A stretch of DNA of 51,978 bases, from assembly GCA_020536535.1 (NCBI GenBank), contig JAHLWZ010000906.1:1-51978 (forward strand). The letters are read 5' to 3'. Under the pieces are notes generated by a model that did not search any database, had not been told where the DNA came from, and saw nothing but the letters and a program-made list of their open reading frames with translations. Source of the stretch: Pelomyxa schiedti. Taxonomy: Eukaryota > Protista > Evosea. The position numbers were made by a program, and so were the translations under genes. Positions 7,780 to 41,373 of the stretch are shown piece by piece. Position 1 is the stretch's first letter, and the number at the start of each line of letters is the position of its first letter.

Positions 7780-8240
7780 TTGGACACGATGATGATGGCC
7801 AGCACCAACAACACGGCTACACCCGGCGGCGGTGGTGGCGCGGGGCGGCCGACGCGGGGCCGCTCCTCCTCCTCCGCCGCCGCGAACAACGTGATCGCGG
7901 CGCCCCTCGACGTAAGCGACGACGAGGCCGACGACTACGGCGACGACGACGACGAAGCGTTCCAGGCCCAGCTCGCCAACGTGCTCCGCCAGCAACAGCA
8001 ACAACAGCAGCAGCAGCAACAGCACACGACGACGCCGTCTCGGCTACCAAAAATTACGTCGCCGACGTCATCGCACACCGGCGCGGCGGCTACGGCTACG
8101 GCGACAGCGACGGGGACGGCTGCGCGTAACGCGGCTGTTGGGGGATATTCGCCATTGAGCAGCCCCTTCCCCTCATGCTGCGGCGGCGGCGACCGTAACA
8201 TAACCACCAACACAACAACGGCAGCAACGGCGGCAGCAGC

Positions 8241-8302
<62 letters not shown>

Positions 8303-10442
8303 ATAGAAATGGTATCGGTGGCGGTGGTGGGGACACAGCTGCTAGTGCTAGTGTGAGGGCTCTGGCTTCCCCGTCATCGCCGGGGCTCGTGCCTCTGGAT
8401 TACACCACGCAGTATGCCTCTCATATAATATATCTACAATCAAACCCGGCTCAACCAACATTGGTGACTGCTTCTCACATTTTTTTTTTTTTTTTAATTA
8501 TTCCAGCCGCACACCTGGAGGTATCATTGGAAATATTCATGGGTCATTTTTGGACACCTGGGAACCTCATTCACCACCGCAAAATCAAGGTGCTCCATGA
8601 ATCACCTCTCATTCTCCTTCTTGATCCCCCTCCTCTGAAATCTTGATTTGGCATCTCCAACCCAAAAACACAGAATGCAATGAAGAAACTGCGCAATGGA
8701 ACTGGGAATCAACACAACTTGTCAAGTTTATACGCAAATATGAAGTCATTCGTGAAGACACTGTGCAATATGAAGACGAGTGGGAGAAACAAGTGAGGGA
8801 TTGTGCATATGATGCCATAGGAAAGCAGAGTTGTTTGGACTTTTCACCACTGCCATCTGAAGTGGTTGCTAGTGAACAGCAAGCAAATGCCATTTTCTCT
8901 GCTGCTTTAGAGTTAGTGACTCGGCTCGGCATATTAGTCCTGGGTGCATTTTCCCCGCAAGGATGTGGTTATGGCAGCGGCAAAGTAGTGCCAGTGACCA
9001 GAAATGACATTATGTTGAGTCTAAACAAGTCACCTGGAAGTAAACATGAAGTGGTTTTTGGCAGTGGCGATCAGATGTGCACGGTGAGAGGACGTAATGT
9101 CGGTGACGCAATTCCACCAGTTGTGTGTGGTGGCCTGAGTGGAGTACTGATTGCTGAAGGATGGGCAGAGTGTGTGACACAATCAATTGCACAAGAACCC
9201 TCAGTTGATATAGTATCAACATGGGGGATGGGCCATGTCAGAGGGTTAGAAGTGAAGCCAGGCTCGGCAACAGAAGTCATGGGAGTGAGAGAAGAAATTA
9301 GTACTATGAGGTCTTTTTTTTTTCCCTTACGATTTTACTAATGATTTTTAAGGCGCGTATTGCGGAAAGTGAAAAGACCAGGACTAGGCGTTATTGGTGG
9401 GCATACTGGTTCTACCGAATTAGGAGATGCCGTTTGTGTATGTGGAGATGTAGTGTATCGCCCAGGATGCACTGTTGGTGTTTCCACTTCACCACAGTAT
9501 TGTGGTGGGGGTTTGCTTCACCCTCAGGATGCACATACGATCATGCTTTACCCACTCATCCTGGAACAAGCCCAGCTTACACGTGCTGCAAATGCTTTGG
9601 GCAGTGGTGTTTTGAATGGCTGTGTTTCCTCTGTCCGTGTTAGAAATACCGAGGGAACCACCTGGAAAGGTGTTGTATGTGATGCAGTGTGTCTCGCTGC
9701 CTCGTGTATGGTGGCCAGCTTTGCGCTAGATGCAGATTACCATGTTCTACACCTTGACAAAGGCACTTCCCCATCTGCGTTGTGGATAATGAGTGCCGTT
9801 AGGTACCGATTAATGTTTTCAATTACTACGCACTAATGAATTCGCAGCCAAGCATTCGCCCGTCAGTCACATTGCGTAGTATTTGCCGATGTCTTTACAA
9901 TCAGTGGATCAGGGACAAGTACCATGTTGTACGAAGTGGCAGCAGCGGCACTTACATTGAGTATCTCCGGCGCCCACCTTCAAGGAGTTGTGAGCCCTAA
10001 CTCTTCCACTCCGACTTCCGCACGCCCGCAAGTTACCTCAAACACAAACACATCCGCATCCGCAGCAGCCACCGCCAACACAACCGCATCATCCACTGAA
10101 TCACCGGAAAACAGACCCGAAGCAGTTCCGCATATCAGCGGGCTTGAAGTGAGACTTTTGGCTGAAGTGGGACAGGCAGCCTGCACACAGCAACTCACGC
10201 CGGCCGAGGCAAATTCTATTATAGGAGGAGTAATGCGGCTCTATGAACACATTCTTGCCGGGAACCCAGGCCACTATGCAGTTGGCAGCGAGGAAAGTGA
10301 ATGGGAAAGGGAGAACTATGCAGGGAAGGCTATTTGGGAAACCTACAACCTCAAAACAATGACGCCGGCACCTTGGTGGCAAGGAATCTATGATACCGTC
10401 AAAGATGAACTCAGAAAACTAGGACTCCACGCTCTAAATTAA
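7780..10442 (+). CDS. mtmB-like: Monomethylamine:corrinoid methyltransferase (MtmB)-like protein, non-pyrrolysine, with a low-complexity N-terminal extension
   Basis: Exons 7780-8411, 8507-8589, 8674-9310, 9353-9437, 9498-9802, 9848-10442 join in frame (2337 nt, 778 aa). The translation is colinear with Methanosarcina MtmB as I recall it: EDEWE~QDDWD; VFGSGDQMCTVRGRNVGDAIPPVVCGGLSG~VLGTGRDAVNVRKRSVGDKAKPIVQGGPTG; KRPGLGVIG~GRPGMGV(O)G; DAHTI~DSHEV; MLYEVAAAALTLSISGAHLQGV~CLLEASAQSITDTASGREILSGV; SGLEVRLLAEVGQA~TGMEARMMGEVARA; AGKAIWETYNLKTMTP...IYDTVKDELRKLGL~AGKTFQECYDVKTVTP...VYDGARKKLEDLGL. Confidence 0.9.
8242..8298 (+). repeat. (AGT)19 coding microsatellite (poly-Ser); a poly-Gln CAA/CAG run lies at ~7989-8022
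   Basis: Perfect AGT x19 inside exon 1 of the mtmB-like gene. Confidence 0.95.
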
Positions 10443-10666
10443 ATTGAACCCTATGCCAACAAAAGCAAATCCAACTAAAGCAAAGCAAACCACTATGTGA
10501 ATGTTTCCCTCATTCACAACAAATTCAAAACAACTCAACTGCACCAACCCATCACCCAACACCAAAAAGAAAACCATCTTCACCTGTGATGGTATCAACA
10601 TTTCTCCATCAGGAATCAATCAATCAATCAACATTCTTAGCGTTGCTACGGTACGAAACGCAACTG

Positions 10667-12188
10667 ATGATGAAAATTGCGCTGTTTGTGGCTCTAGTGA
10701 CACTTTGTCTGGTGGATGGCCTCGCCGTTTTTGAATTGACACATAGCGAGGGCTATGAGATGGGCCTGGAATTCGGAGCCGCGTTTGCACCTGTTTTTAA
10801 GAACTTCCTTATGGTATTTGGTGATTGTGAACACAGTGTCATAATTTCTGACCTTGAGCGGCTTTGTTGGGGGATATAAAAAAGAATACTAACTCCTGTG
10901 ATATCAATTTTGATTCTAATCACACTCATAGCACGACCTGGAAGTTCTTGCTCTTATTCAGCGTTACAACACTGACCCTGAATTTGCTTCCCTGATTGAC
11001 AGTATAATGGCTACCCAAAAACAGTTCTACCCTGTGACCTACGAAGAACTGGAGGGTATTGCTGATGGATTAGGTGTTCCATTCGAGGAGGTGGCCATTG
11101 TGAATACAGTTGGAGACCTTGTAAACTACTGGGACAGCGGTTCTGCACACAGACACCGCGGAAAAGGCTGCTCTGATGCTACTTCACAGTACCGTATGTG
11201 ACCGTGTAGATTCGCAAGCTCTTATTTTTTCCCAAGAAGGTGAGAGTAGTGCATGGGTTCATGGGCATAACGAGGATTGGAACTCTCAAGTATGGAATTG
11301 CTGTCATATTCCTTCTAACAATCTAATTTAAGGTTGCCAAATTGACTGCCCTTATTATAACTCCGGAATGGACAAGCTACTGCTATCCAGGGGAACTCCC
11401 TGGAACAACTTTCTCTTGGAACAAGCATGGCATCATTATGTCCCTCGACTTGATCTATCCCCTCATTGACACCTATAATTCTGGGGTGGGGTGCTTGATT
11501 GTTGGAGAAGGTGAATTGATACTCAATAGGCTACTATGGGATTTGTGATGCGAGAGGTGTTAAAAAGCACATCCCTAGACCAAGCCATCAGCCGGGCAAC
11601 TCAATACAACTCGTTTTATGGGTTCAATGCTGTCATCTCTTCCCTATGTGACAAAAGAACCGCCATTGTTGAAGCAATTGTTGACAAGGCAGCAGTTGTA
11701 TCTCTAGCGTAACCTTCTCCTTTCACGGCACAATAATACTAATATTACGATAGACAACCCACGGCAGTAAATGCAAGTTACGCCCACTTCAATCTTGTTG
11801 AGTACCTTCGAGCAGATCAAGAAGATGATCAGTACATTGCCTTAAAGCAAAGCTGTTTCAACGAAACCAAGTATTCCCCCCAAAAGAACAACTCCAATTC
11901 CAGCAGCAGTTTAACTCAACTCCGCATTATAGACCGCATACATATGACCAGATACTTGCATTCCTCGGCTCCTCCGCACCCACTTGCCCAGTGTGGGCTA
12001 CCCTTCTGGGTGACCAGACCATGCATTCACTGACAACTGACCTCACTTCTTGCCTGTACTCCTCGTCAGCTGAAGCCCATCCCACAGAAACCACCCAACA
12101 GTGCAAACCCACTCTCTTCATCTGGGATTCCCCACAGCCCTCTGAGCCCCTAATGTCCATCACCTACAATTACACTTGTAGTGCTTAA
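10667..12188 (+). CDS. Secreted peptidase C45 family Ntn-hydrolase (acyl-CoA:6-APA acyltransferase / Tan-like), multi-exon
   Basis: Signal peptide MMKIALFVALVTLCLVDG; YEELEGIADGLGVPFEEV; KG-CS nucleophile Cys; VHGHNEDW; YPGELPGTTFSWNKHGI. The last exon ends at the TAA at 12186-12188. Confidence 0.85.
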
Positions 12189-12351: not shown

Positions 12352-15300
12352 CTAGTGTTTCACATCCATGTCCACGTATGAGCTTGTGTTCTTCTTCCTC
12401 CTGGCCTCTGCTTGTTTAATCCTGAACTGTCTGATGGCCAAGAAACCACCGGCGCAGCCACCAACGAGAACAACGCAGCCTCCTCCGGCGCATACAACGA
12501 TGATCCACCAGTTGGACTTCTGGCACCCAGAGCCGGTGGCTCCTATCTTGCAGTTACACTTGCCGTTGTCCTGGCACTTTCCGGAGTTGCTGCAGCTGTA
12601 TGGGCACAGTCCTTGGGGATTTGTGTGAGTCTTGGATAGCGTGGTAGTGGGATAAATACTTTGTGAGCAGTTGACACCGCCCCACTCGTCTATTGGGCTA
12701 CAAGTACACTTGCCATTGAATGGATTGCATGTTCCATGTTTCGAGCAGTTCAGAGGGCAAGATTCTGGCAGAGGTAAGAAAAAAAAAAGAAAGTTGTTGA
12801 GGAAGGGCAGATACTGAAGTAGCAATCAGGCGGTAGGTAGTACGCATCACACGTGCAAACACCTGTTCTGTTGTTGCATTTGCCGTGCCCTCTGCAATTA
12901 CTTGGGCACTTCACTGTACATAAGTTACCAAATTAATGTTAATGGTACGGGCATACCGTAACTGCAGTCTGTCCCATAGAACGGGTACTTGCACAAGCAT
13001 TCACCCTTCTGTGTGTTACAGAGGCCGGCAGTGGCATTCGTGCAATTCTTAGGGCAAGCGACTTGGTTGTTCAGTTAGGGCAGAGTGGCAGGCAAGAGTA
13101 AACTTACAGTAGGGTACTTCACATGCATCCCCTGAATAGTGATCATCGCAGTCACAAGTACCCGTGGTATTGTCGCACTTTCCGTGAGAAGAGCAAGGAG
13201 TCTTGCCTTGGCACTATTTTGTTGTCTCAGCTCTTATAGAGATACACTTTTAGTTTTACCTGTTTGTATTTGCAAGTGTCGCCATAATATCCTCCTTGGC
13301 ACACACATTTGCCAGTTCTACTCCCAGTTAAACATATTTCTACAAAGGAAAAAGATACGTAGTGTCACAACTTCCATGCACACAAGCGGGACAGCTGAAG
13401 TTGGCTATCTGGCAACCCTTTCCAGTGTAGTTGGTTGTGCACTTGCAATTTCCTGTAAACCTGGGAAACACGAGTGAGATGGGAACGGCAGTTCTGAAGT
13501 GCAAACTTGTCACACGTTCCATGGGGCCAAGAGCAATTCAGTGTGCAAGAGGCTGCGGCAGTGTAAATGTAAATCAAAGGAATTTGTTTACCCACCATAG
13601 AGACATTGCGGTAAGAGCCAAGGGGAGAAACAAGCACACTGGCCAACCGTGGAATCACAGTGTCCATGTGTACCAGTACAGTTATTCGGGCAGAGGTCTA
13701 GAAATTGATTAAAATGCTGAAACAAGAAAAGGGAAACTCCCTACAGTTTGGAGCTTCACATGCAGTTCCCGTGTAATTGGCGGTACAAGTGCAGGCACCG
13801 GTAGTGGAATTGCAAGTACCACGACTGGAACAGGGGGTCAGGCCCGGACACTACAGAGGGTTAATGGCTTAAAATTCATAAAAAAAAAATACAAACCTGC
13901 ATGAGGTTGCAAGTATCACCATAGTAACCACCATAGCACACACATTTTCCCGTACTAAGGTAAAATTTTACAAAAGAAAAGATAGATAAAAACCCACGTT
14001 ACATCACAGTTTCCGTGCTCACAGGGAGGACTGCAGGTAAAGTTGGCGATTTGACAACCTTTTCCTGCATATGTTGACAGGCACTTGCAGACTCCAGTTG
14101 TCCTAAAAAAAAGTTATAAGTCTGAGAGGGAAGCCGTGGGTGGAAAGCTACTGGTCACAAGTTCCGTGTGGATAGGAACAATTCAATGTGCAAGTTGCTT
14201 GGTTGGGGTAAGAAAGAAGGCAGAATGGATAGGAAAATACCAAGTTTACAGTCGGGGAGCTGCCAAGGCGAGTAGCACGTGCAATTTCCAGTTGTAGGGT
14301 CACAGTGTCCGTGAGCCCCAGTGCAGTTATTGAGACAGGGACCTGATCAAGTAAGTAAGGGGTAACAATAGAAATTCCGTACGTATGGGCTCCAAGCACG
14401 AAAGACCGTCATAATATTCGGCGCAATGACATAAACCTGTTGTCTGCACATGGATTGGTACGGTATAATGAGGGAAGAAAGTCTTACTGTGTTGCAGACT
14501 CCGTGTAGGTCACACTTATCTGGGCAGTACTTGTACTGACATTTGTCGCCATAATACCCATAGTAGCAATAGCATTTGCCTGTGTAGTTGTCAAGTTACC
14601 GGAACGGTGACTTGAAATTACCTTGAAGTGTGTTGCAATAACCATTGCCACTGCAATTGAGGTCACTGTAGAGAAAGTTAGGAGAAAAGGAAAGCCAGCT
14701 TAAAAAACGCACAGGCATGAGTAGTACGGGGTACTGCAAGTTACATCATAAGGGTCGGTGTAATTGGTGTCGCAAGTACAGTCTCCAGTGAGGTAATCGC
14801 ACGTGCCGTGGCCAGAGCAGTTGTTGGGGCATAACACTGCAGAAAGTGAGAACCGATTTTCTAACTTGAGCCACTCGTACTGTTTCTACAGTCCGTGCCA
14901 AAGTAACCGACGTAGCAAGTACAATCTCCCGTTGTGTGATTGCATAGCCCATTTCCGTTGCACCCATTTTCGCGAGACGGCGGGCACATGGCAGAAAATA
15001 CTTCACAACCCTACACAAGCCAATAAGAACAAGGGGAAAATGAGTAGAGGATGTTAACTGTTCCTATCCAGTCTTGGTCGCAAACGCAGGAACCCCTGGA
15101 AAGTAGTTGGGAAAGGAAAAGAAAGGGAAAACAAAGGGATAGTACGATGCGTTATTGCATGCTCCGTGACCCGAACAGTTCAGTGAGCACAATTTATACT
15201 GGCAAGAATCACCATAGTAGGGATTTGTGCAAATACAAGACCCGACACTGGTATCACACAAACCTCTCACACTCGAAGTACAGAAATCGTGTGAGGCACA

Positions 15301-27303: not shown

Positions 27304-30300
27304 ATGAGCAAGGCTGGTGTGGGTACGTTGTTGCTCACGGTTCAGTCCGCTTGGGATCTCAAAGTCAGCGGTATCGTTTTATGTTATTGGGTTTTCTTTT
27401 TTTTTTTTTTTTCCCCCTCGCGTGTCTGTGTGCAATACGAAGAGCAGTGCTTTTAATTTATTGGAAAAATGCTACCAGAAAATGTATTTTTTGTTACGTA
27501 TCGTGTTTGGTGCTTTTTCTCGTTTCTCGTGTCTAATGCCCTCGCATTTTTTCTTTATTTTGTATGCAAACGTACCATAAAGCTGTGGTATTACATTTCA
27601 ATGAAAATAGAAACATTTAGCAATCCAACAATGACCCCAACACATCGAACTTTTTTTTTAACAAAACCCAAAAACAGATGCCGTGGGCAGCTCAGACCCC
27701 TATGTTGTCATTATTTATACGGACACAGCAGGGAAAAAAATAAAGTTAAAGACCCGTGTAATTCCCAAAACTGTTACCCCAGTTTGGAATCAGGATTTTG
27801 AAATCGTTGTTGGGCAGCCTCCAAAGAACCCCAAAAAACCACACAAGCAGTATCCCCGCATCAAGTTTCGTGTCCAAGACAGTGATGTATTTTTTGATGA
27901 TACAATTGGCACTGTTGCATTTGATCCCACACTAACACTTCCCCATGGGGGAGTTCCTGTTGATTTGACTCTGGCCTTGTCACTTAAAAGTGATCCAAAA
28001 TTGGGCAGTATCATTGTTGCTTCTACACCAGCCTCCACAGCTACTTCTGTGGAAACTCCACCCCCACCACCAACACCTACAGCAGCCACTGACAATGTTG
28101 TCCTCCCTTCTGCAACAACTGAAGGTTCAACAGAAGCCGCAACGTCAACATCACCTGCAGAACCAACTTCCCCTGCGGCAATAACAGAAACAACAGCCAC
28201 AGCTACTTCCACAGGCACAACTACTGACACATCTGCAACGGCCACAGCCACAGCCACTACCACATCATCTACCACAGCAACCACCACGGCAACCGCCACA
28301 GCCACAGCCACAGCAACAGTAACAGCAACTACAGTGGCGTCATCAACTACTACTACAGCATCAACACCTACAGAAACCAGCACAACAAGCACCGCAGTTA
28401 GACCTGCAGCTCCTGCAAACTCGCGAGGTGTTTTGAAAATCAAGGCTGTCTTTATACCAGCACATCCTGTAAATCAATTTGCTTCAGTGTGCCAGTGGGA
28501 GGTATCACTCCTGACCTCTGACAAGGACAATGCAGGCATGTCGGACGAAACTGCCACTCTCCAATTAATAGGAACTAGTGCTGGAGGCGGTGTGGCCTCT
28601 CCCCCAATGAGGGTTAGTGCTAGTCACGGGTTTCCAAGGAACTCAACAAAGAGCTGGAGAATATATGCCCGTGATGTTGGGGCAATTGCAAGAGTTAGGG
28701 TATGCCGAGATGTTGCAAGTGCAACAGGAGGCAGCTGGATGATAGGTACTGTAACCCTGGCACCTGTCAGTGCATCAGGAATGACTGGAAATGCCATAGC
28801 ATTCATTGTAAAAGACGGTTCCATTATGGAGACCTCAGGCTCCTTTGTTGATGCAGTGCCGGCTATTGGAGGATCTTCAGCAGGACCTACAAATGCAATT
28901 GTGCCCTCGGCTACTTCAGGGCTTCGTGACGTAATATACACTGTAGTTGCCAAGACAGGTGACCGAAAAGGTGCGGGTACTAATGCTCCAGTGTCGATTG
29001 TACTGATCGGGGCCCATGGCAAATCTCAGCCGCTATATCTCGATTCTGCTTCTCCCGACGCGTTTACACGCAACCATGAAGACACTTTCCGCGTAGTTTC
29101 ATGCTATGTGGGTGAAGTACAGCGCATAAGAGTGGCTTTGAAACCCACTGACCCTCCATCATCTTGGTTCTTGGAGAAGATGTGCATCTTTCCTGCCGAA
29201 GCCCGTGTGGCGACGGCGAAGAGGTGGTTCCATTGTGGTGAATGGCTTGGTGCAATAGGTGAGAAGGAGCGCGTTATCAGCGCTTCGCTGCATGAAAATG
29301 CACCTGCCACCCTCGCCCCTTCAACAAGGAGATATAAGGTGTTTGTGTTCACTGGTGATAGGAGGGGTGCTGGTACTGATGCAAACGTATTCATCCGCGT
29401 TTTTGGAGAAAAGGGGGAAAGTGGAGAAGTTCATCTGGAGGGTGCTGGAAAGACGTTTGAAAGAAAGGGAAAAGATGAGTTTGGATTTGAATCCAAAAAC
29501 TTGGGGGAACTGCAGAAAATTCTGATTGGCCACGACAACAGTGGCTTCAGCCCTGCATGGTTCCTTGATCATGTAGTGATTGGAGAAGAGGGAGTTACTG
29601 GACGAGCATGGTTATTTGCATGTGGCAGATGGTTTTCAAAGAAGGATGAAGACGGAGAAATAGAAAGAGTCATTGCTGCAGCACCAATTACTGGGGGTGT
29701 TGGAGAGTGGTGCTCCCCTCCTCTAAGGCACTATCAAATAACCACAATTACCGGAGACAGAAGAGGGGCAGGCACTGATGCCAACGTCTACATTATCTTG
29801 CATGGTGAGAAGGGTGTATCACCAAAAAGCTCTTTAGAAGGCCCTGGGAACAGATTTGAAAGGGGCAGAGCAGATGAATTCGGGATTGAATGCCCGGATT
29901 TAGGCAATTTGAAAAAGGTGACTATTGGCCATGACAATGGTGGTCTTGGACCAGCTTGGTTTTTGGATAAGGTGATAGTTCAAGGCGTTGAAGACAAAAT
30001 CATGTGGTACTTCTTGTGTGGGAAATGGCTTTCTAAACATGACGGTGATAAACGAATTGAAAGGGACCTGGAAGCCCTCCCACAAGATGGAGTGGCATCA
30101 CTGCCTCTGATGAGGTACCGTGTTACAACAGTTACTGGTGACAGGAGAGGTGCTGGCACTGATGCAAATGTTTTCATTAACATCAAAGGTGAGGAAGGAA
30201 AAGAGAGTGGAAATAAGAAGTTGGATGCTGCTGGAAACTGTTTTGAAAGGGCACAGAGTGATATCTTTGGTGTTGAATGCGAAAAATTAGGTGCTGTCAA

Positions 30301-33300
30301 GTCTATTATCATCGGTCATGATAACAGTGGATTTGGCGGAGCTTGGTATCTTGAAAAGGTATTCCACTACATTCCATTTTTATGCTTAATTTTTTTTCAC
30401 AAGGTTATTGTTGAAGAACATATCCCAAATGGACGAAAGTGGTTCTTCCTCTGTGGAGATTGGATTTCCAAAAAATCGGAAGGCGGATTACAGAGAGAAC
30501 TTACTGCCATTGCAGAAGATGGTCCAGCTTCAGCTCCGATGAGGCGATATCGTATCGAAGTTTGCACTGGAGATAGACGTGGTGCTGGAACGGACGCGAA
30601 TGTGTATGTTCAACTCCATGGGGAAAAGGGTGTCTCCAGAAAGAGTTTCCTTGATAAACCTGGAAACTGTTTTGAGCGGAATGATGTCGACGTGTTTGGC
30701 ATGGAGGAAGTGGACCTTGGACCTCTACATAAGTTGGTCATAGGTCATGATAATAGTGGATTTGGTGCTGCCTGGTTTTTGGATAAGGTTAGCTTGTTTT
30801 CTTGAGCCTTTTTTAACGATCCCTGACATACAACTAACTTACCACAAGGTAAATGTGACGGAAGAATCATCTGGAGCAACATGGCGTTTCTTCTGTGGTA
30901 AGTGGCTGTCAAAGGACTGTGACGACCACCTTATAGAGCGAATTCTTGAACCTCTTCCTGATGACGGATCTGCCTCACGATTAGCTTCTCTACCTCTGCG
31001 ACACTATCGTGTTACTGTAAAGACTGGTGACAGACGAGGTGCCGGAACTGATGCCAATGTCTTTGTTGAACTTGTTGGGGTGGAGGGAAGCAGTGGCCAA
31101 AGGAAGTTGGATGGAAGAGGCGATCCATTTGAAAGGAAAAAGGAGAGCCCCTTTGGAGTCGAGTGCCCAGACCTTGGAGATTTGAGAAAGCTTATAATTG
31201 GGCATGACAACAGTGGGTTCAGTGCTGGGTGGTTCCTTGACAAAGTTGTTGTGCGGGAAGAGGATGGTGACAATGTAGGAAGAGAAACCTATTTCCTATG
31301 TGGCAGGTGGCTTGCTGATAATGAAGACGACAAACAAACAGTTAGAGAAATCCCAGCGCGAACCAAAGATGGAATTGCTTGTGCACCACTTAAAAAATAC
31401 AGGATAACTACCGTTACAGGAGACCGACGTGGTGCAGGAACTGATGCAAATGTATATGTTGTGCTACATGGTACTCAGGGGAATTCAGCTCAACAATTTC
31501 TAGATGGACCAGGAAATAGATTTGAGCGCGGAAAGTCTGACGTTTTCTCCTTGGAATGCGTTGATTTGGGTGATATTACAAGCTTGACTATAGGCCATGA
31601 TAACTTTGGTGTTGGTGCCGCCTGGTTCTTGGACAAAGTTATTGTGCAAGAAGAAGCCACTGACCCCTCTACTCCCGCTCCACCTCCTCTCTTTTTCCTA
31701 TGCCGCAGATGGCTAGCCAAGGATGAGGAGGATGGTTTGATTGAGAGAAAGCTTGATGCCATCCGAGAAGATGGCGGCCCGTCTCACCCCTGGGCACACT
31801 ACATTGTAACAACTGTAACCGGGGATCGAAGGGGTGCCGGAACTGATGCCAATGTATATGTTGACATAAAAGGAGCAGATGGAAGCACAGGGCCGCGGAA
31901 ACTTGAAGGAAGTGGAAACTGTTTTGAGCGAAAGAGTGCAGACAAATTCGGGATTGAGTGTGCTTCCATAGGGGATTTGCAGTCACTTGATGTTTGGCAT
32001 GACGGGTCTGGATTTGGTTCTGCATGGTTCTTGGATAAGGTACTGACACTTTCCTTCCCAGTGATTACTCTAACTCTACTAAATAGATAATTGTCGAAGA
32101 GGAATACCCGAGATGTGGCCTACGTTGGTTTTTCTTGTGTGGCCAGTGGCTGAGCAAATCTAAGGAAGAAGACGCAACAGATTCTGAGCAACCACCTTCC
32201 CTTCGAAAGACTCTAACACCTCAGTCGATAGATGGTACGAGCTGTGCACCTCTAAAGCATTACAGGGTAACAACAGTCACTGGTGATAGAAGAGGTGCTG
32301 GAACTGATGCAAACGTTTATATTACCATCTTTGGAGAAAAAGGAACTTCCCCAAAGACATTCCTCGATGGACCAGGGAATAGATTTGAAAGAAACAGAGC
32401 AGATGAATTTGGTTTGGAGACTGCGGACTTGGGAGCCTTATCCAAGATTATCATTGGGCATGACAATGGCGGTCTTGGCCCGGCATGGTTTTTGGACAAG
32501 GTGATTATTCAAGAAATGGAAACGGGAGGCATCTGGTACTTCCTATGTGGAAAGTGGCTCTCGAAACATGATGATGACAAGTTAATTGAAAGGGAGTTAC
32601 CTGCTCTGTCCAATGATGGAGTTGCATCATTACCTTTGACACGCTACAGAGTCACCACAGTTACTGGTGACAGGAGAGGTGCTGGAACTGATGCTAATAT
32701 TTTCGTGAACTTATTTAGCACTGAGGAGGGAAAGAGCAGTGGCGAAAAGAAACTTGATGCAGCAGGAAACTGTTTTGAGAGAGCACAAAGTGATGTCTTT
32801 GGAATAGAATGCGAAAAACTAGGGGATTTGAAATCTGTGATTGTTAGAAATGATAACAGTGGCCTAGGTTCTGCTTGGTTCCTGGAGAAGGTATTGGGTA
32901 CCTAATCTTCTTTTTCTTGAAGTCTCAATATGCCTACAGATTATCATTGAAGAAGATGTAGCTAATGGGAAAAAATGGTTCTTCTTATGTGGCGATTGGC
33001 TGTCTAGGGATACTGAACTACAAAGAGAGTTACCTGCTATTAGTCATGACGGGCCAGGATCTCCTCCTTTAAGGAGATATCGCATTGCAGTTCACACGGG
33101 AGATAGACGTGGTGCTGGTACTGATGCAAACGTCTATGCAATTTTACATGGTGACAGGGGTGTTTCCAAGAAATATGCTTTGGAAGGTCCAGGAAACTGC
33201 TTTGAGAGAAAGAATGTTGATATATTTGGTGTGGAGGCAGTAGATTTGGGACCTCTGAGAAAACTTGTTATTGGTCATGATGGTGCTGGCTTTGGGTCGG

Positions 33301-36300
33301 CTTGGTTCCTGGATAAGGTTTGTTCCAAAGGCCAAAACTGGGCAGAATAAAATAAAAATAGGTTGTAATCACTGAAGAAAGCTCTGGCGCCATTTGGACC
33401 TTCCTCTGTGGGAAATGGTTATCCAAGCAATGTGAAGACCACTTGCTGGAACGAGAACTTGAGCCTCTACCTGACTCTGCTGCTGATGCTCGGTCATGTC
33501 TCCCTCTGCGACGTTATCATCTCACTGTCAAGACTGGAGACAGAAGAGGTGCTGCCACAAACGCCAACGTGTTTGTGGAGCTTTGTGGTGCACTGGGTAC
33601 TAGTGGGCAAAGGCCTCTTGATGGTGCTGACGACCCATTTGCACGAGGGAAGGATAGTGAGTTTGGTATTGAATGCCCTGATGTTGGAGAGCTTCGGAAA
33701 TTAATAGTTGGGCATGATAATAGCGGCATTGGAGCTGGCTGGTTCCTTGACAAAGTGATAGTAAGAGAGGAAGATGGTGAAAGAGCAGGGAAGGAAGTTT
33801 ACTTCCTCTGTGGCAGATGGTTGGATGACAGTCAGGATGACAAACAAATCGTACGAGAATTACCCGCAAGGACACAGGATGGAGCAACTTGCGCACCTCT
33901 AAAGAGGTATAGAGTGACAACAATAACAGGGAATAGGCGCGGGGCAGGAACTGATGCCAATGTTTATGTTATTATACATGGCACTGGTGGCGATTCTTGC
34001 AAGCAAATCCTAGATGGACCTGGAAACAGATTCGAGCGTGGGAAGACGGACTTATTTGCGGTGGAGTCTGTGGATTTAGGGGAACTGAAGAGCGTTACAA
34101 TTGGACATGATGGAAGTGGGATTGGGAGTGCCTGGTTCCTTGAAAAAGTAATCGTTCAGGAGGAGTCTGTGTCAGCAGTCGACGGCTCAGTGGCAGGAAA
34201 ACCTCCAATGTTCTTCATGTGTGGGAGATGGTTAGGCTCAGATGAAGAGGATGGGGCCACTGAAAGAACCCTCACAGGTTCAAGTGAGGACGGGTGTTGC
34301 TCATCTGATTGGGTTCGTTACATCATAACTACCGTTACTGGTGACAGGAGAGGTGCTGGGACTGATGCCAACGTTTTCATAGACATACGTGGCAAGACAG
34401 CAAAAACAGGGCAGAGGAAGCTTGAGGGAAGCGGAAATTGCTTTGAAAGAAAGGCCAAAGATAACTTCTCTGTTGAGTGCTCCGACCTTGGCGAATTGGT
34501 AGACCTGGATATTTGGCATGATGACTCTGGCATCGGCGCATCCTGGTTCCTTGATAAGGTTTCCTTTTCTCCCCATGTAAAAATGTACTTACAGTTTTGC
34601 GGTAGGTAATTGTTCAAGAGGATCGTCCTACAGGGCGTCAATGGTACTTCTTATGTGGACAGTGGCTCAGTAAGGAGGTAGTCGAAGAGACAGATCACCA
34701 ACCCCCTTCTCTTAAGAGAACTCTTACTGCATCTCAATTTGATGGTGTCAGTTGTGCAGCTCTTAAGCATTACAGGGTGACTACAATTACTGGAGATAGG
34801 AGAGGAGCTGGAACCGATGCAAACGTTTATATCATTATGTTTGGTGATAAGGGTGCCTCACCAAAATCACAACTTGATGGACCAGGGAACAGGTTTGAGA
34901 GAGGCAGAGCGGACGAATTTGGACTGGAATGCATAGATTTGGGTAGTTTGACAAAGATTGTAATAGGGCATGATAACAGTGGTTTTGGTGCATCCTGGTT
35001 CCTCGACAAAGTGGTCATAAAAGAAGAGGAATCAGGTTCAACATGGTACTTCTTATGTGGAAAATGGCTTTCAAAACACGAAGAAGACAAATTGATAGAA
35101 AGAGAACTTGATGCACTTACTGCAGACGGAGTTGCGTCACTACCTTTAATGAGATACCGAGTCACAACAGTCACTGGTGACAGGAGAGGTGCTGGAACTG
35201 ATGCTAATATTTTTGTTACCCTTGTTGATGAGGAGGGAAAGAGCAGTGAGGAGAAGAAGCTTGATGCAGCAGGAAATTGTTTCGAGAGAGGAAATAGTGA
35301 TGTGTTTGGAGTAGAATGTGAAAAATTAGGGGCACTCAAGTCATTAACTGTAAGAAATGACAACAGCGGACTTGGTTCTGCTTGGTTCTTGGAGAAGGTT
35401 CTCCTCTTTCTTCAATTACTTCGTGAATAATTGCATCATAGATAATCGTTGAAGAAGATATTCCAAATGGGCATAAATGGTTCTTCTTATGTGGTGATTG
35501 GCTTTCCCGAGATACTGCACTACAACGTGAACTAGCTGCTGTAGCACAAGACGGTGTTGCTTCTGTACCTGTAAGGCGTTACCGTATAGAAGTTCAGACT
35601 GGAGATAGACGTGGTGCTGGTACTGACGCAAATGTCTATGCAATTTTGCATGGAGAAAAGGGTGTCTCTCGCAAATTCTCACTGGATGGGCCAGGGAACT
35701 CTTTTGAAAGAAGACAGGTGGCAACTTTTGGTGTTGAATCACCTGACGTAGGAGCTTTAACCAAACTTGTAATTGGACATGATGGCTCTGGAATTGGATC
35801 TGACTGGTTTTTGGAGAAGGTTTCATTTTCACCAAGTTGATTTGTTTTCAACTACTTGCACAGGTATCAGTAACTGAAGAGAGCTCAAGGGCGACATGGT
35901 ATTTCCTTTGTGGCAAGTGGTTGTCCAAAGACTCTGAAGATCACTTACTTGAGAGGGAACTTCTACCTGAACCAGATTCAGGTGCTGCTGCCAAACTAGC
36001 ATCACTTCCTTTACGCCACTACCGCATTCTTATACACACTGGAGATCGCAGAGGAGCAGGAACAGAGGCGACTGTGTTTGTAGAACTGATTGGGTCCATT
36101 GGTTCCAGTGGGCAAAGAAAGTTGGATGGAGCTGGAGATGCCTTTGCAAGGAACAAGGACAGTGTATTTGGAATCGAGTGCCCTGATGTTGGAGAGCTTA
36201 AGAAACTGATTATTGGGCATGACAATAGTGGCCTCAGTGCGGGCTGGTTCCTTGACAAAGTGGTTGTTAAGGAAGAGGATGGTGATAGAGCTGGAAAGGA

Positions 36301-39300
36301 CACGTTCTTCTTGTGTGGTAGGTGGCTTGCTGACGATGAAGATGACAAACAAATTATACGAGAACTACCAGCCAGAAACGAGGATGGAGTCTCCTGCGCT
36401 CCTCTGAAGAAATACCAAGTAACTACAGTTACTGGGAAGAGACGTGGTGCAGGAACAGATGCAAACGTTTACGTTATCATTCACGGATCACTTGGGGACT
36501 CAGCGAAGCAATTTTTGGATGGACCTGGGAACAGGTTTGAGAGAGGTCAAAGAGATGTGTTCCTGGTGGAATGTGTGGACCTGGGGGTGCTAAACAGTGT
36601 TACCATTGGTCACGATGGAAGTGGACTTGGGAGTTCATGGTTCTTAGATGAGGTTATTGTTCAAGAAGAGCTATCTGCCAAAGGGGACTCTGCTGCTGTT
36701 GCCACCCCACCCGCTCCTGTTTATTTCATGTGTGGAAGATGGTTGGCAAAAGATGAGGAAGACCACGCAATAGAGAGGACACTTACAGCGGTACTGAAGG
36801 AAGGAACTGGTCCTGGTGCCTGGGTGCGTTATATTGTAACGACCCGAACAGGGGACAGAAAGGGAGCAGGCACTGACGCCAATGTATTCGTCGATATCCG
36901 TGGCGCAACTGGAAGCACGGGACAAAAGCAACTGACTGGAAAAGGAGACTGCTTCGAGCGAAAATGTGAAGCCAAGTTCGGTATTGAGTGTGAATCTTTG
37001 GGAGATCTTGTTTCCCTTGACATCTGGCATGATGGTTCTGGGTTTGGGTCAGCCTGGTTCCTTGATAAGGTATTTTCTCCGAATAAATAGGCGTTCCACT
37101 TACTGGGATAAAGGTCATCGTTGAGGAGGATGTTCCAGCAGATGGCAGAAAGTGGTTCTTCCTATGTGGGAAGTGGCTGAGCAAATCTTCCATGGATCCT
37201 TCAGATCCCTCTCCTTCAATTAGGAAAACTCTTGTACCTCAAATGCGTGATGGTGAAAGTTGTCCACCACTCAAGCGCTACAGCATTTCTGTAAAGACTG
37301 GTGATAGAAGAGGCGCTGGAACTGACGCCAATGTTTACATCATTCTACATGGAGAGAAGGGAATTTCTGCCAAGAATTTCCTTACAGGGCCAGGAAACAA
37401 GTTTGAGAGGGGTAGAACTGACGAGTTCGGCATGGAATGTGTGGATTTGGGCACTCTGACTAAGATTACAATTGGCCATGATAATAGTGGGATTGGAGCC
37501 TCATGGTACTTGGAGAAGGTGGTTGTGAAGGAAACAGAGGGAGCATCAGCCTGGTTTTTCTTGTGTGGAAAGTGGCTGTCAAAGCATCAGGATGGTGGTT
37601 TGATTGAGAGAGAGCTTCCTGCACTTTCCACTGATGGTGTTGCAGCCTTGCCTTGGGTGCAGTACAAGGTAACAACTGTGACCGGAAATAGGAAGGGTGC
37701 TGGCACTGATGCAAACGTTTTTGTGAATATCGTGGGAGAAGATGAAAAATCTACCGGGAACAAGAAACTAGAGGGTTCAGGGAACTGTTTTGAGAGAGGT
37801 CAATCAGACTCATTCAGCATCGAGTGTGAGAAACTTGGCGAGCTGAAGTCTCTCAAAATATGGCATGACAACTTTGGAATAGGAGCTGACTGGTTCCTGG
37901 AAAAGGTAATTTGTTTCTCTCTGCATTCCTCTAAATGTGCTATCAGGTGATTGTAGAAGAACTGGCCGCAGGAAAAGCTTGGTACTTCTTGTGCAACAAG
38001 TGGCTCAATAAATCCGAGGGTCTCTCTCGTGATCTGACTCCCATTGCCCACGATGTTTCTACTGATTGCCCACTTCGTCACTACCGAGTTGATGTAAAAA
38101 CGGGTGATAGGCGCGGTGCTGGGACTGATGCAGGTGTCTATGTGATTTTACATGGGCAAAAAGGAGTATCAGAGAAACACAGTCTTGACGGTGGAGCCTT
38201 TGAGCGAAACAAAGAGGACACTTTTGGGTTTGAGGAAGCAGAATTAGGTACTTTAACTAAGCTGGTCATTGGACATGATAACAGTGGATTTGGGGCTTCC
38301 TGGTTCCTCGAGAAGGTATTTTATCTTTATCACTGTTCCTCCAGTAATATGAATGAAGGTGAGGGTTGTTGAAGAAGAATCCGGCACTGTTGCGAACTTC
38401 CTGTGTGGCAAATGGCTAGCCAAAGACATGGAAGATAACCTTATTGAACGAGAACTTTTACCCAGTGCAACCGACGGGGACGCCTCTGCCCCGCTCCGCA
38501 TGTATCGCATCAATGTATTCACTGGTGATAGGCGTGGTGCGGGGACTGATGCCCGCGTATCAATAACTCTGTTTGGTGCGAGTGGGAATAGTGGAGAAAA
38601 GGTGTTGGAGGGGAAAGGTAATTTGTTTCTCTCTGCATTCCTCTAAATGTGCTATCAGGTGATTGTAGAAGAACTGGCCGCAGGAAAAGCTTGGTTTTTC
38701 TTGTGTGGAAAGTGGCTGTCAAAGCATCAGGATGGTGGTTTGATTGAGAGAGAGCTTCCTGCACTTTCCACTGATGGTGTTGCAGCCTTGCCTTGGGTGC
38801 AGTACAAGGTAACAACTGTGACCGGAAATAGGAAGGGTGCTGGCACTGATGCAAACGTTTTTGTGAATATCGTGGGAGAAGATGAAAAATCTACCGGGAA
38901 CAAGAAACTAGAGGGTTCAGGGAACTGTTTTGAGAGAGGTCAATCAGACTCATTCAGCATCGAGTGTGAGAAACTTGGCGAGCTGAAGTCTCTCAAAATA
39001 TGGCATGACAACTTTGGAATAGGAGCTGACTGGTTCCTGGAAAAGGTAATTTGTTTCTCTCTGCATTCCTCTAAATGTGCTATCAGGTGATTGTAGAAGA
39101 ACTGGCCGCAGGAAAAGCTTGGTACTTCTTGTGCAACAAGTGGCTCAATAAATCCGAGGGTCTCTCTCGTGATCTGACTCCCATTGCCCACGATGTTTCT
39201 ACTGATTGCCCACTTCGTCACTACCGAGTTGATGTAAAAACGGGTGATAGGCGCGGTGCTGGGACTGATGCAGGTGTCTATGTGATTTTACATGGGCAAA

Positions 39301-41373
39301 AAGGAGTATCAGAGAAACACAGTCTTGACGGTGGAGCCTTTGAGCGAAACAAAGAGGACACTTTTGGGTTTGAGGAAGCAGAATTAGGTCCTTTAACTAA
39401 GCTGGTCATTGGGCATGATAACAGTGGATTTGGGGCTTCCTGGTTCCTCGAGAAGGTATTTTATCTTTATCGCTGTTCCTCCAGTAATATGAATGAAGGT
39501 GAGGGTTGTTGAAGAAGAATCCGGCATTGTTGCAAATTTCCTGTGTGGCAAATGGCTAGCCAAAGACATGGAAGATAACCTTATTGAAAGAGAACTTTTA
39601 CCCAGTGCAACCGACGGGGACGCCTCTGCCCCGCTCCGCATGTATCGCATCAATGTATTCACTGGTGATCGGCGTGGTGCTGGGACTGATGCCCGCGTAT
39701 CAATAACGCTGTTTGGTGCGAGTGGGAATAGTGGAGAAAAGGTGTTGGAGGGGAAAGGTAACCCATTCCAGCGCAAGTCACAAGCCAGTTTTGGGATTGA
39801 GTGCCCTGATATAGGTGACTTGCAGAAGATAACCATTGGTCATGACAATAGTGGCATCAACTCAGCTTGGTTCCTTGACAAAGTTGCTGTCAAAGAGGAG
39901 AGGAAAGGCGGCAAAGAATGGTTCTTTCTCTGTGGTAAGTGGCTTGCCAAAGGGGAAGATGATGGACTCACTACGCGCGAACTCCTTGCAAGTTCTAAAG
40001 ATGGTGTTGCTTCACTGCCAATGAAACGATACGCAATTAAAGTTCACACTGGTAATATCCGCGGCGCCGGAACTGATGCCAGGGTGTACATCACACTGAT
40101 TGGAAACAAGGGTGTATCTGAGAGACAATTCTTGGATGGCCCCTCTGGTTCTTTTGAAAAGAACAAGACAGATACATTCGGGATTGAGTCTGTGGACCTT
40201 GGTGACCTCTCCCGCGTTGTGATTGGCCATGACAACACCGGGTTTGGCGCTGCCTGGTATCTGGATAAGGTGACAGTCTCAGAGGAAGAGTCGGCTGATA
40301 ATCCCCATCCACACAAGTGGACTTTCATTTGTGGAAGATGGCTGGCTACCAATGAGGATGACCACAGAATAGAGCGAGAACTGACAGTTTCTGTAGGCCC
40401 ACCACCTCCAGGTTCTGCTGGGTGGTGCCGGTACATACTGGAATTCTACACTTCAAAACTGAGGGGTGCCGGAACTGATTCAAATGTCTTTGTGATTATA
40501 TTCGGTGCCAACTCTAACACCGGAAGGCACGTAATGCCTGCTCGGCGCAAGTCCTTTGAGAAAGGAAGTGTGGATACTTTTGGAATTGAGGCACCTGATG
40601 TTGGTCCAGTAACTAAAATTACTGTCGGGCACGACGGGAAGGGATTCAATTCAGGTACTTTTACCTAACTACACTATACAAAACACAACAATTATAAATT
40701 CACATTCTTTCCAGGTTGGCACCTTGAGAAGGTAATTATTTCTAAGGAAGGAGCACCTGACAAGTGGTTCTTCACAGTCAATAAGTGGTTCGATGTCTCT
40801 GAGGGTGACCACCTCACAGTCCGTGACGTCATCGCCTCCACAGCCGATGGAACTCCCACAATTCCGATGGTCCCCTACAAGATCGTGGTTGTTACCGGCA
40901 CAGAAAAGCACGCCGGGACAAATGCCAACGTATGTTGCGAGTTGATTTCCGCTACGGGCGTCACAAGCGGAGCACTACCGCTTCAGAATAAACGAGGATT
41001 CAACACAGGCGAGGAAGTTGACTTTGGGTTTGAGCTCCCTCACCTCGGAGAATTGACTTCACTCAAAATATGGCATGACAACCATGTGTGCCCCTGTTCT
41101 CCGTTATTCTCTTCTTATTATTAGGAGACTAATGGCACTAAACATGCCGACACTTTCCTAATTTTTAGAATACCTTCACTAATGGTTTTCTATTTGTAGG
41201 GGCTGAGTGCCGGCTGGTACCTAGAAAGTATAACAGTGTCAACAGACACAAAGGAGTGGTTCTTCCCGTGCAACAAATGGCTTGACAAGAAAAAGATGGA
41301 TGGGGCAATATCACGTGTACTTGTACCAGGGCCCAAGCCCAATCCTCTTACTACTAGTACATCCAGAAGTTGA
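27304..41373 (+). CDS. C2 domain + Thr/Ala-rich linker + ~30 PLAT/LH2 domains (LOXHD1-like architecture)
   Basis: C2: probable first exon MSKAGVGTLLLTVQSAWDLK at 27304, then GSSDPYVVI..KTRVIPKTVTPVWNQDF..DSDVFFDDTIG. The motif Y-x5-TGDRRGAGTDANV..IGHDNSG.G..WFLDKV is seen 30 times (3 within the duplication, one truncated), plus one degenerate PLAT near 28500. Stop at 41371-41373. The 5' exon junction is uncertain, and the frame is perturbed at the duplication junction. Confidence 0.9.
37552..39761 (+). repeat. Tandem 1070-bp duplication (37552-38621 and 38692-39761) with a 70-bp templated insert at the junction
   Basis: Offset is 1140. The first ~700 bp are identical and I count 10 substitutions in the last ~370 bp. 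Insert 38622-38691 copies ~37912-37981. Confidence 0.95.

Follow-up and report, generated by a model that had tools for sequence, protein, structure and literature searches.

MtmB-family methyltransferases are regarded as enzymes of methanogens and anaerobic bacteria. In MtmB, pyrrolysine (Pyl) is located at the bottom of an anionic active-site cleft and is thought to activate methylamine (PMC2933860). The sole characterized family member lacking pyrrolysine is MtqB of Methanococcoides methylutens Q3c, which methylates a corrinoid protein from tetramethylammonium or choline; other non-Pyl members are described as being of unknown function (PMC13044021). Here, we have analyzed a gene of the anaerobic amoeba Pelomyxa schiedti located at positions 7789 to 10442 on the forward strand of contig JAHLWZ010000906.1 (assembly GCA_020536535.1). 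The whole stretch of 51,978 nucleotides is referred to as the window, and all positions without prefix refer to it. A previous interpretation based on the nucleotide letters, the sequence-only reading, had described the gene as an intron-containing eukaryotic homologue of the methylamine methyltransferase MtmB. As judged from its sequence, the gene encodes a eukaryotic, intron-containing member of the MtmB family. We consider it probable that it was acquired by lateral gene transfer, was remodelled in the eukaryotic lineage and likely encodes a corrinoid-dependent methyltransferase.

The Pfam profile MtmB (PF05369), which has a gathering cut-off of 25 bits, matched exon 3 of the gene with 48.4 bits (E = 8e-13, profile positions 15–179 of 450) and exon 6 with 34.7 bits (E = 1.2e-8, profile positions 371–450), so that each exon exceeded the cut-off by itself. 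Both pieces also matched the MtmB1 entries 1L2Q, 1NTH and 1TV2 of the PDB, exon 3 with an E-value of 6e-7. A hidden Markov model constructed from 40 prokaryotic homologues gave 288.5 bits for the spliced window protein (E = 7e-81 when scaled to 1.8e9 sequences) and was covered from position 46 to 453 of 455; none of 200 shuffled controls scored against the same profile. An exhaustive phmmer search with exon 3 against 1.84 billion representative proteins returned 20 matches, all of them MtmB-family proteins with at most 38% identity. Alignment with MAFFT revealed that the window protein is colinear with full-length homologues from about residue 248 to its C-terminus at residue 775 and that its barrel carries three host-specific insertions of 10, about 40 (low-complexity) and 17 amino acids. 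The end-to-end alignment of the C-terminal 530 or so residues with MtmB, claimed by the sequence-only reading, is thus borne out, and the Pfam comparison which it had proposed was significant in two exons, and the spliced protein matched the 40-prokaryote profile over nearly the full length of that profile.

A second eukaryotic orthologue was found on a 255-kb metagenome contig with 39% GC from ENA (ERZ21831265, ctg81561l; hereafter L001), which is also present in Logan (ERR12015700; L002). This contig is considered eukaryotic because it carries a long interspersed nuclear element (LINE)-like element (Exo_endo_phos/RVT_1/RNase_H, L001:1-4151) and fragments of PX, Ras-like and kinase genes. The orthologue, located at L001:9408-11246, was modelled with five exons (9408-9616, 9662-9905, 9944-10344, 10379-10768 and 10808-11246) encoding 560 amino acids; its introns of 45, 38, 34 and 39 nt are very short and all of the GT-AG type. 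It scored 376 bits against the 40-prokaryote profile, end to end, and showed 35% identity to the window protein. The best phmmer match to exon 3 was a protein of 125 amino acids (P0001) encoded on this contig, the homology of which stops exactly at the position of window intron 3. Upstream of the barrel, both eukaryotic proteins contain the motifs NNV..AP.DVS.DE.D and GSF..WEP.SP, which are absent from all prokaryotes. Introns 3 and 5 of the window gene interrupt the same codon in the same phase as introns of L001; the probability of two or more such coincidences by chance is about 7e-5. Furthermore, the two proteins have 16 residues in common which are missing from the related bacterial clade, including a His three residues past the pyrrolysine position. 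In a tblastx comparison of L001 with the window, the MtmB-like gene was the sole match. An Rfam search of L001 gave no match, and an additional 10 kb of its sequence contained no marker gene.

Immediately 5' of the MtmB-like gene in L001, at a distance of about 280 bp and on the same strand, the region L001:8550-9090 encodes a 2x[4Fe-4S] ferredoxin domain (Fer4, E = 3e-10) with an N-terminus that resembles a flavin reductase by eye. A conserved linkage with a flavin-reductase/ferredoxin gene was considered and rejected, as the ferredoxin motif occurs nowhere in the window.

Two pieces were folded, standing in for the full-length window protein: the C-terminal uninterrupted open reading frame (ORF) of 299 amino acids from the L001 orthologue and exon 3 of the window gene. 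The AlphaFold model of the former had a predicted local distance difference test (pLDDT) value of 85.9, and its top structural matches were the three Methanosarcina barkeri MtmB entries 1TV2, 1L2Q and 1NTH (E = 2e-13, TMq 0.84, root mean square deviation 2.3–2.4 Å). Values of pLDDT below 50 were found only at residues 143–156, which represent read-through of the in-frame 39-nt intron. Window exon 3 alone yielded a modest model (pLDDT 68), the sole significant fold matches of which were again 1NTH, 1L2Q and 1TV2 (E = 4e-7). The comparison with the MtmB crystal structure suggested in the sequence-only reading therefore agrees with the family assignment for these two parts, to which folding was confined.

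The window gene consists of six exons and five introns, with every intron starting with GT and ending with AG; the spliced sequence of 2328 nt contains a single stop at its end. This architecture had been proposed by the sequence-only reading, and its open frame holds; the start needed correction, since its length of 778 amino acids counts from a TTG at 7780 and the first ATG, at 7789, gives a product of 775 amino acids. The mechanically determined ORFs 7780-8646, 8643-9341 and 9360-9836 terminate at stops within introns 2, 3 and 5. In the model, exon 1 (7789-8411) encodes a low-complexity N-terminal extension with poly-Gln, poly-Ser and Ala/Thr/Gly runs and also bears the first motif common to the L001 orthologue (NNV..AP.DVS.DE.D). 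Intron 1 (8412-8506; 95 nt, GTATGC...TTCCAG, 33% GC) contains a T-tract ahead of its acceptor; its phase (2) equals that of L001 intron 1, and both are located at a comparable distance 5' of the second motif. This motif is found in exon 2 (8507-8589) as GSF(L)DTWEPHSPP and is kept in L001 (GSFVGHESWEPPSPS). Intron 2 (8590-8673; 84 nt, GTGCTC...ACACAG) includes the end of the frame-1 ORF of exon 1. Exon 3 (8674-9310) encodes the N-terminal half of the MtmB-like domain, with homology starting at about 8709 (residue 248) and the 10-aa insertion at 8943-8972. It is followed by intron 3 (9311-9352; 42 nt, GTCTTT...TTTAAG, 24% GC), which contains an in-frame stop and corresponds in position and phase to L001 intron 3.

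Exon 4 (9353-9437) encodes the strand that holds pyrrolysine in true MtmB (KRPGLGV-I-GGHTGSTELGD), and intron 4 (9438-9497; 60 nt, GTATGT...CCACAG, 50% GC) is in frame and free of stops. Exon 5 (9498-9802) encodes the central barrel strands; the invariant Asp487 (9528-9530) is kept here, and the motifs NE.K (P495/I497) and GG.AG (R525/N526) are lost. Intron 5 (9803-9847; 45 nt, GTACCG...TCGCAG) has an in-frame stop and shares position and phase with L001 intron 4 (..S|QAF..). Exon 6 (9848-10442) encodes the C-terminal third of the domain up to the TAA stop at 10440-10442 and includes the Ser/Thr/Ala-rich insertion of about 40 aa (about 9993-10125) and the 17-aa insertion (10272-10322).

All five splice junctions are predicted models. 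At introns 3, 4 and 5, the junctions align to the homologues without gaps. For introns 1 and 2, several other GT-AG pairs preserve the frame, for example acceptor 8685 in place of 8673, and intron 1 additionally has alternative donors; exons 1 and 2 as predicted are validated by the N-terminal motifs shared with L001. Removal of intron 4 is argued by homology alone: the protein then fits all homologues gap-free, and retention would add 20 amino acids seen in neither L001 nor any prokaryote. An exact-product look-up of the exon-6 ORF gave no match, and the exhaustive phmmer search with exon 3 produced no self-hit; since neither a self-hit nor an independent gene call turned up, splicing is supported by sequence logic and homology only.

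Some further features of the two genes were observed. Each contains one stop-free intron with a length that is a multiple of three (9438-9497 in the window, L001:10769-10807), retention of which leaves the frame open. Exon 1 of the window gene includes in-frame microsatellites, namely (AGT)~22 at 8242-8306 encoding poly-Ser and (CGA)13 at 7917-7955 encoding an Asp-rich stretch, as well as a CAG/CAA poly-Gln tract near 7990-8025. The GC content at third codon positions (GC3) was 0.60 in exon 1 as compared to 0.41 in the remainder of the gene. Inspection of the C-termini of the two eukaryotic proteins, HALN and ISD, by eye revealed no peroxisomal targeting signal type 1 (PTS1).

The genes surrounding the MtmB-like gene in the window are of eukaryotic type, as the sequence-only reading had stated. 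A Sel1-repeat/kinase gene is located upstream and genes for an AAT/peptidase-C45 protein and an EGF-like protein are located downstream, with a giant PLAT-repeat gene beyond. Codon usage is host-like: GC3 of the barrel-encoding part was 0.41 as compared to 0.37–0.45 in the neighboring PLAT gene, and relative synonymous codon usage correlated with r = 0.54. Moreover, the five introns are all of the GT-AG type, and stops or AT-rich tracts occur in three. These features indicate that the gene is a genuine nuclear gene of the anaerobic amoeba. Regarding the neighbors themselves, the intron-containing gene at 10586-12030 (+) has a signal-peptide-like start and a match to AAT/peptidase-C45 (PF03417), the region 12355-12825 (-) encodes a Cys-rich EGF-like membrane protein, and long ORFs at 27683-40668 (+), in which one C2 domain and no fewer than 17 PLAT/LH2 domains are encoded, probably form a single giant PLAT-repeat gene.

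It is well known that Archamoebae have acquired enzymes of anaerobic bacteria by lateral transfer. The origin of the gene was analyzed with trees calculated by IQ-TREE under the model LG+C20+F+G4. The sample consisted of the two eukaryotic proteins, 36 GTDB loci, database proteins and one genuine Pyl-type MtmB (L040, GCA_001914405.1), which contains an in-frame UAG and adjoins pylC, pylD and MtmC; the 36 loci originated from a search with a narrower alignment, are biased to Methanomethylicia and Bacillota, and are all non-Pyl. The two eukaryotic proteins were sisters (support 100/99), and the pair joined a bacterial non-Pyl clade of the Anaerolineae type with 100/99. A position of the eukaryotes as sister to the sampled bacterial non-Pyl clade as a whole received moderate support (91/78). 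The eukaryote plus Anaerolineae-type group was placed next to a Bacillota clade with 100/96 and 99/96 in two trees, and Pyl-type MtmB was distant from the eukaryotic proteins. A profile of the Anaerolineae-type clade matched at least 963 clusters (90% identity) at E ≤ 1e-20; among the 120 matches listed, all named members belonged to Chloroflexota (Pelolinea, Anaerolineales, Anaerolineaceae).

Because the eukaryotic clade joins a pyrrolysine-free subfamily, all named members of which are from Chloroflexota/Anaerolineae, the data point to a bacterium, and not to a methanogen, as the donor. The trees are best explained by one transfer event, which would have started from an Anaerolineae-like bacterium and preceded the divergence of the two eukaryotes. 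The phylogeny with Pyl and non-Pyl MtmB envisaged by the sequence-only reading thus placed the window protein inside the family, and the lateral transfer followed by domestication which it had postulated is in agreement with the introns, the host-like codon usage, the N-terminal extension and the orthologue in a second eukaryote. The three described symbionts of P. schiedti are Syntrophus, Vesiculincola and Methanoregula, none of them belonging to Chloroflexota, and Methanoregula is hydrogenotrophic (PMC10579272).

The position occupied by pyrrolysine in Pyl-type MtmB was examined in the alignment. The codon ATT (9393-9395) for Ile462 of the window protein aligns with the UAG/pyrrolysine codon of the Pyl-type reference, in which UAG was read as X; the corresponding residue is Leu in L001 and Leu or Met in the bacterial clade. 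The absence of pyrrolysine was therefore inherited from the donor, and the window protein, as judged from its sequence, is not a methanogen-type monomethylamine:corrinoid methyltransferase. The eukaryote-specific His465 (9402-9404) is located three residues past this position; His was found there in none of 40 prokaryotes. Among 55 family-conserved columns, 41 are kept in the eukaryotic proteins as compared to 44–54 in prokaryotes. The Pyl-strand motif RPG.G..G...S..LGD is preserved in full, as are, among others, the invariant residues Asp487, Glu607, Arg376 and Tyr710.

Additionally, the genomic context of the bacterial relatives was determined. Members of the bacterial clade adjoin corrinoid proteins (PF02607+PF02310) and a RACo activase, which indicates that the donor family is corrinoid-dependent. 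In one case, the gene order is GntR regulator, RACo activase, corrinoid protein, MtmB homologue, two adenine-deaminase-like amidohydrolases and Bmp; another member of the donor clade has amidohydrolases, a Bmp ABC transporter and a molybdoenzyme resembling xanthine dehydrogenase as neighbors. As judged from these neighborhoods, the bacterial clade may act on N-methylated purines, perhaps as corrinoid-dependent demethylases. In the contexts of P0022 (L041), P0067 (L042) and P0082 (on a contig in ERZ25072999), purine-type genes are recurrent, Bmp/BPD_transp_2 ABC transporters among them, and GntR regulators, corrinoid proteins and a RACo activase are found there as well. Among bacterial sequences, P0190 (L044:1-2882) has the highest similarity to the L001 protein (41% identity). 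Its gene overlaps the end of the preceding gene by 4 nt; on a longer contig with P0190, this preceding gene is seen to encode a hybrid sensor histidine kinase (HisKA_7TM/PAS/HisKA/HATPase/Response_reg), and no corrinoid protein is encoded within 8 kb. P. schiedti itself possesses a B12-dependent MetH (PMC8887013).

We propose the following sequence of events and reactions. A bacterium with a pyrrolysine-free MtmB homologue, of a type now abundant in Chloroflexota/Anaerolineae, would have passed its gene to an ancestor of the two eukaryotes. After the transfer, introns would have been gained and an N-terminal extension of about 245 mostly low-complexity residues would have been added. The TIM-barrel domain of about 530 residues would bind in its cleft a methyl donor which is already activated or otherwise different from methylamine, perhaps a quaternary or heterocyclic N-methyl compound, and would pass the methyl group to a Co(I) corrinoid, as its bacterial relatives presumably do. 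For the corrinoid partner, a gene at another site of the host genome is assumed, and the amoeba would obtain cobalamin. The cleft was apparently remodelled in the eukaryotes, so that a different substrate, a different acceptor or even a changed activity may have resulted. That the protein is still a corrinoid-dependent methyltransferase for a donor other than methylamine is a tentative step within this account, to which we assign a somewhat less than even chance. A wider scheme, by analogy to the bacterial relatives, is that anaerobic amoebae run a corrinoid-dependent demethylation in which the methyl group of an N-methylated food compound would be transferred to a cobalamin carrier and into one-carbon/methionine metabolism, using symbiont-made cobalamin; this is speculative and rather improbable. 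The purine-catabolic neighborhoods of the bacterial relatives give a hint to methylated purines or quaternary amines as candidate substrates.

Alternative explanations concern both the origin and the function of the gene. The prokaryotic affiliation of the family and the missing self-hit in the exhaustive protein library might suggest that the gene is a decaying pseudogene or that the locus consists of prokaryotic DNA present through contamination or mis-assembly. The stop-containing GT-AG introns break the frame, and their removal restores an alignment over the full length; the ORF is intact across 775 codons, and an intact orthologue with shared introns exists on another eukaryotic contig. 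With eukaryote-type genes on both sides within one 52-kb window and host-like codon usage, we regard contamination and pseudogene as very unlikely, in line with the sequence-only reading, which had used the introns as an argument against contamination. A separate transfer into each of the two eukaryotes, with one bacterial clade as the common source, could explain why the L001 protein shows higher identity to P0190 from bacteria (41%) than to its Pelomyxa counterpart (35%). The monophyly of the eukaryotes (100/99), the two identical intron positions, the motifs of the N-terminal extension common to both, and the 16 derived residues together with the same motif losses speak against it and leave this explanation with little probability, so that a single transfer is preferred. 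Equally implausible is a true monomethylamine:corrinoid methyltransferase feeding a methylamine/one-carbon pathway tied to a methanogenic symbiont. Family membership is all that favors it; Ile occupies the pyrrolysine position, the trees place the protein with non-Pyl bacterial homologues and distant from Pyl-type MtmB, the published methanogenic symbiont, a Methanoregula, is hydrogenotrophic, and methylamines are mentioned in neither of the two Pelomyxa papers (PMC10579272, PMC8887013). For these reasons, and with two motifs of the active-site region lost, we retain neither the view that the protein is equivalent to methylamine methyltransferase nor the possible link to methanogenic partners that the sequence-only reading had suggested.

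A more serious rival is a barrel that was repurposed or became catalytically dead and is kept under selection for ligand binding, scaffolding, a regulatory role or other chemistry, with the N-terminal motifs serving new interactions. Several observations weigh against a retained methyltransferase and are compatible with such a barrel. The GG of GG.AG, which each of the 29 non-redundant prokaryotes in the comparison possesses irrespective of pyrrolysine, is lost in both eukaryotes, and so is NE.K, which is 86–90% conserved among the same 29 prokaryotes; the residues found instead are R525/N526 and P495/I497 in Pelomyxa and G362/D363 and M332/S334 in L001. The HPIH motif of the clade is lost in both eukaryotes as well, and the segments with lost motifs also differ between the two proteins. 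As far as can be judged from the alignment, this pattern resembles relaxation of the inherited cleft more than fixation of a novel active site. The eukaryotic branches are long, with 1.4 and 0.9–1.0 substitutions per site as compared to 0.13–0.5 in most members of the bacterial clade. A six-frame hmmsearch with a corrinoid-protein profile (no profiles of RamA and MtbA were applied) revealed no corrinoid protein in the 52-kb window (best E = 2.7), in accordance with the statement of the sequence-only reading that no MtmC is encoded there, and none around the L001 orthologue (best E = 0.45; 30 kb examined). Likewise, neither a reductive activase nor an MT2 methyltransferase was seen in the window or in the roughly 30 kb of L001/L046 covered. 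Transcript evidence was sought and not found, and expression and splicing are thus predicted. The conserved new His, the eukaryote-only N-terminal motifs, and the bacterial relative P0190, with its overlapping sensor kinase gene and without a corrinoid protein nearby, fit a repurposed barrel too. On the other side, 41 of 55 family-conserved positions including Asp487, Glu607, Arg376, Tyr710 and the Pyl-strand motif have been kept, clustering with partner genes is not expected in eukaryotes, and the host uses cobalamin for MetH (PMC8887013). On balance, a repurposed or dead barrel is considered less likely, although it has to be taken seriously, and a laterally acquired, remodelled and probably corrinoid-dependent methyltransferase remains the preferred explanation.

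A full-text literature search for "monomethylamine methyltransferase" with amoeba or protist terms yielded no paper, and none of the papers retrieved on MtmB, eukaryotes and lateral gene transfer together concerns a eukaryotic MtmB homologue. The two papers on P. schiedti do not mention MtmB, methylamine or corrinoids (PMC8887013, PMC10579272), and the 2026 MtqB paper, which describes the first function for a pyrrolysine-free member, nowhere contains "eukaryot" in its text (PMC13044021). As the sequence-only reading had assumed, no characterized eukaryotic member is mentioned in the literature searched; a eukaryote-specific subfamily of MtmB that combines an extended N-terminus and a remodelled cleft is apparently unreported there. 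This intron-bearing, conserved subfamily in at least two eukaryotic lineages extends the MtmB family to eukaryotes and adds to the evidence that anaerobic amoebae import cobalamin-linked bacterial chemistry. An active protein would represent a new eukaryotic methyl-group salvage route dependent on B12 from the symbionts; an inactive one would be a clean example of a catalytic barrel repurposed after transfer. Furthermore, a testable substrate hypothesis is obtained for a very large bacterial clade (at least 963 clusters), several members of which are located beside purine-catabolic genes.

In comparison with known systems, the window protein resembles MtmB1 of M. barkeri (1NTH/1L2Q/1TV2) in belonging to PF05369, in its TIM barrel (TMq 0.84 for the orthologue model), in its colinearity from the N- to the C-terminus and in the invariant Asp, Glu, Arg and Tyr residues; identity to the Pyl-type MtmB of L040 is about 27%. 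It differs from MtmB1 by Ile462 in place of pyrrolysine, by the loss of GG and NE.K, by the N-terminal extension of 245 aa, the three insertions and the spliceosomal introns, by the lack of an adjacent MtmC and by its distant position in the tree. MtqB, to which it is likened by description only, is likewise a pyrrolysine-free member of the MtmB family and shows that activity is possible on substrates without activation by pyrrolysine; MtqC/MtqA-like partners were not seen for the window gene. Its closest counterparts are the non-Pyl homologues of Anaerolineae/Chloroflexota annotated as "monomethylamine:corrinoid methyltransferase" (P0067 from Chloroflexi bacterium RBG_16_54_11, P0085 from Pelolinea sp.), which are joined with it in trees at 100/99 and show 32–41% identity. 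They share with the eukaryotic proteins the signatures SQAFAR, ADYH.LH, RYEHV and GNPG, and in both groups the pyrrolysine position is occupied by a hydrophobic residue (L/M/I). In contrast to the eukaryotic proteins, these bacterial proteins of about 457 aa have no N-terminal extension and retain VGGLGG, NE[LM]K and HPIH, and their genes are often located beside those for corrinoid proteins, RACo activase, ABC transporters and purine catabolism.

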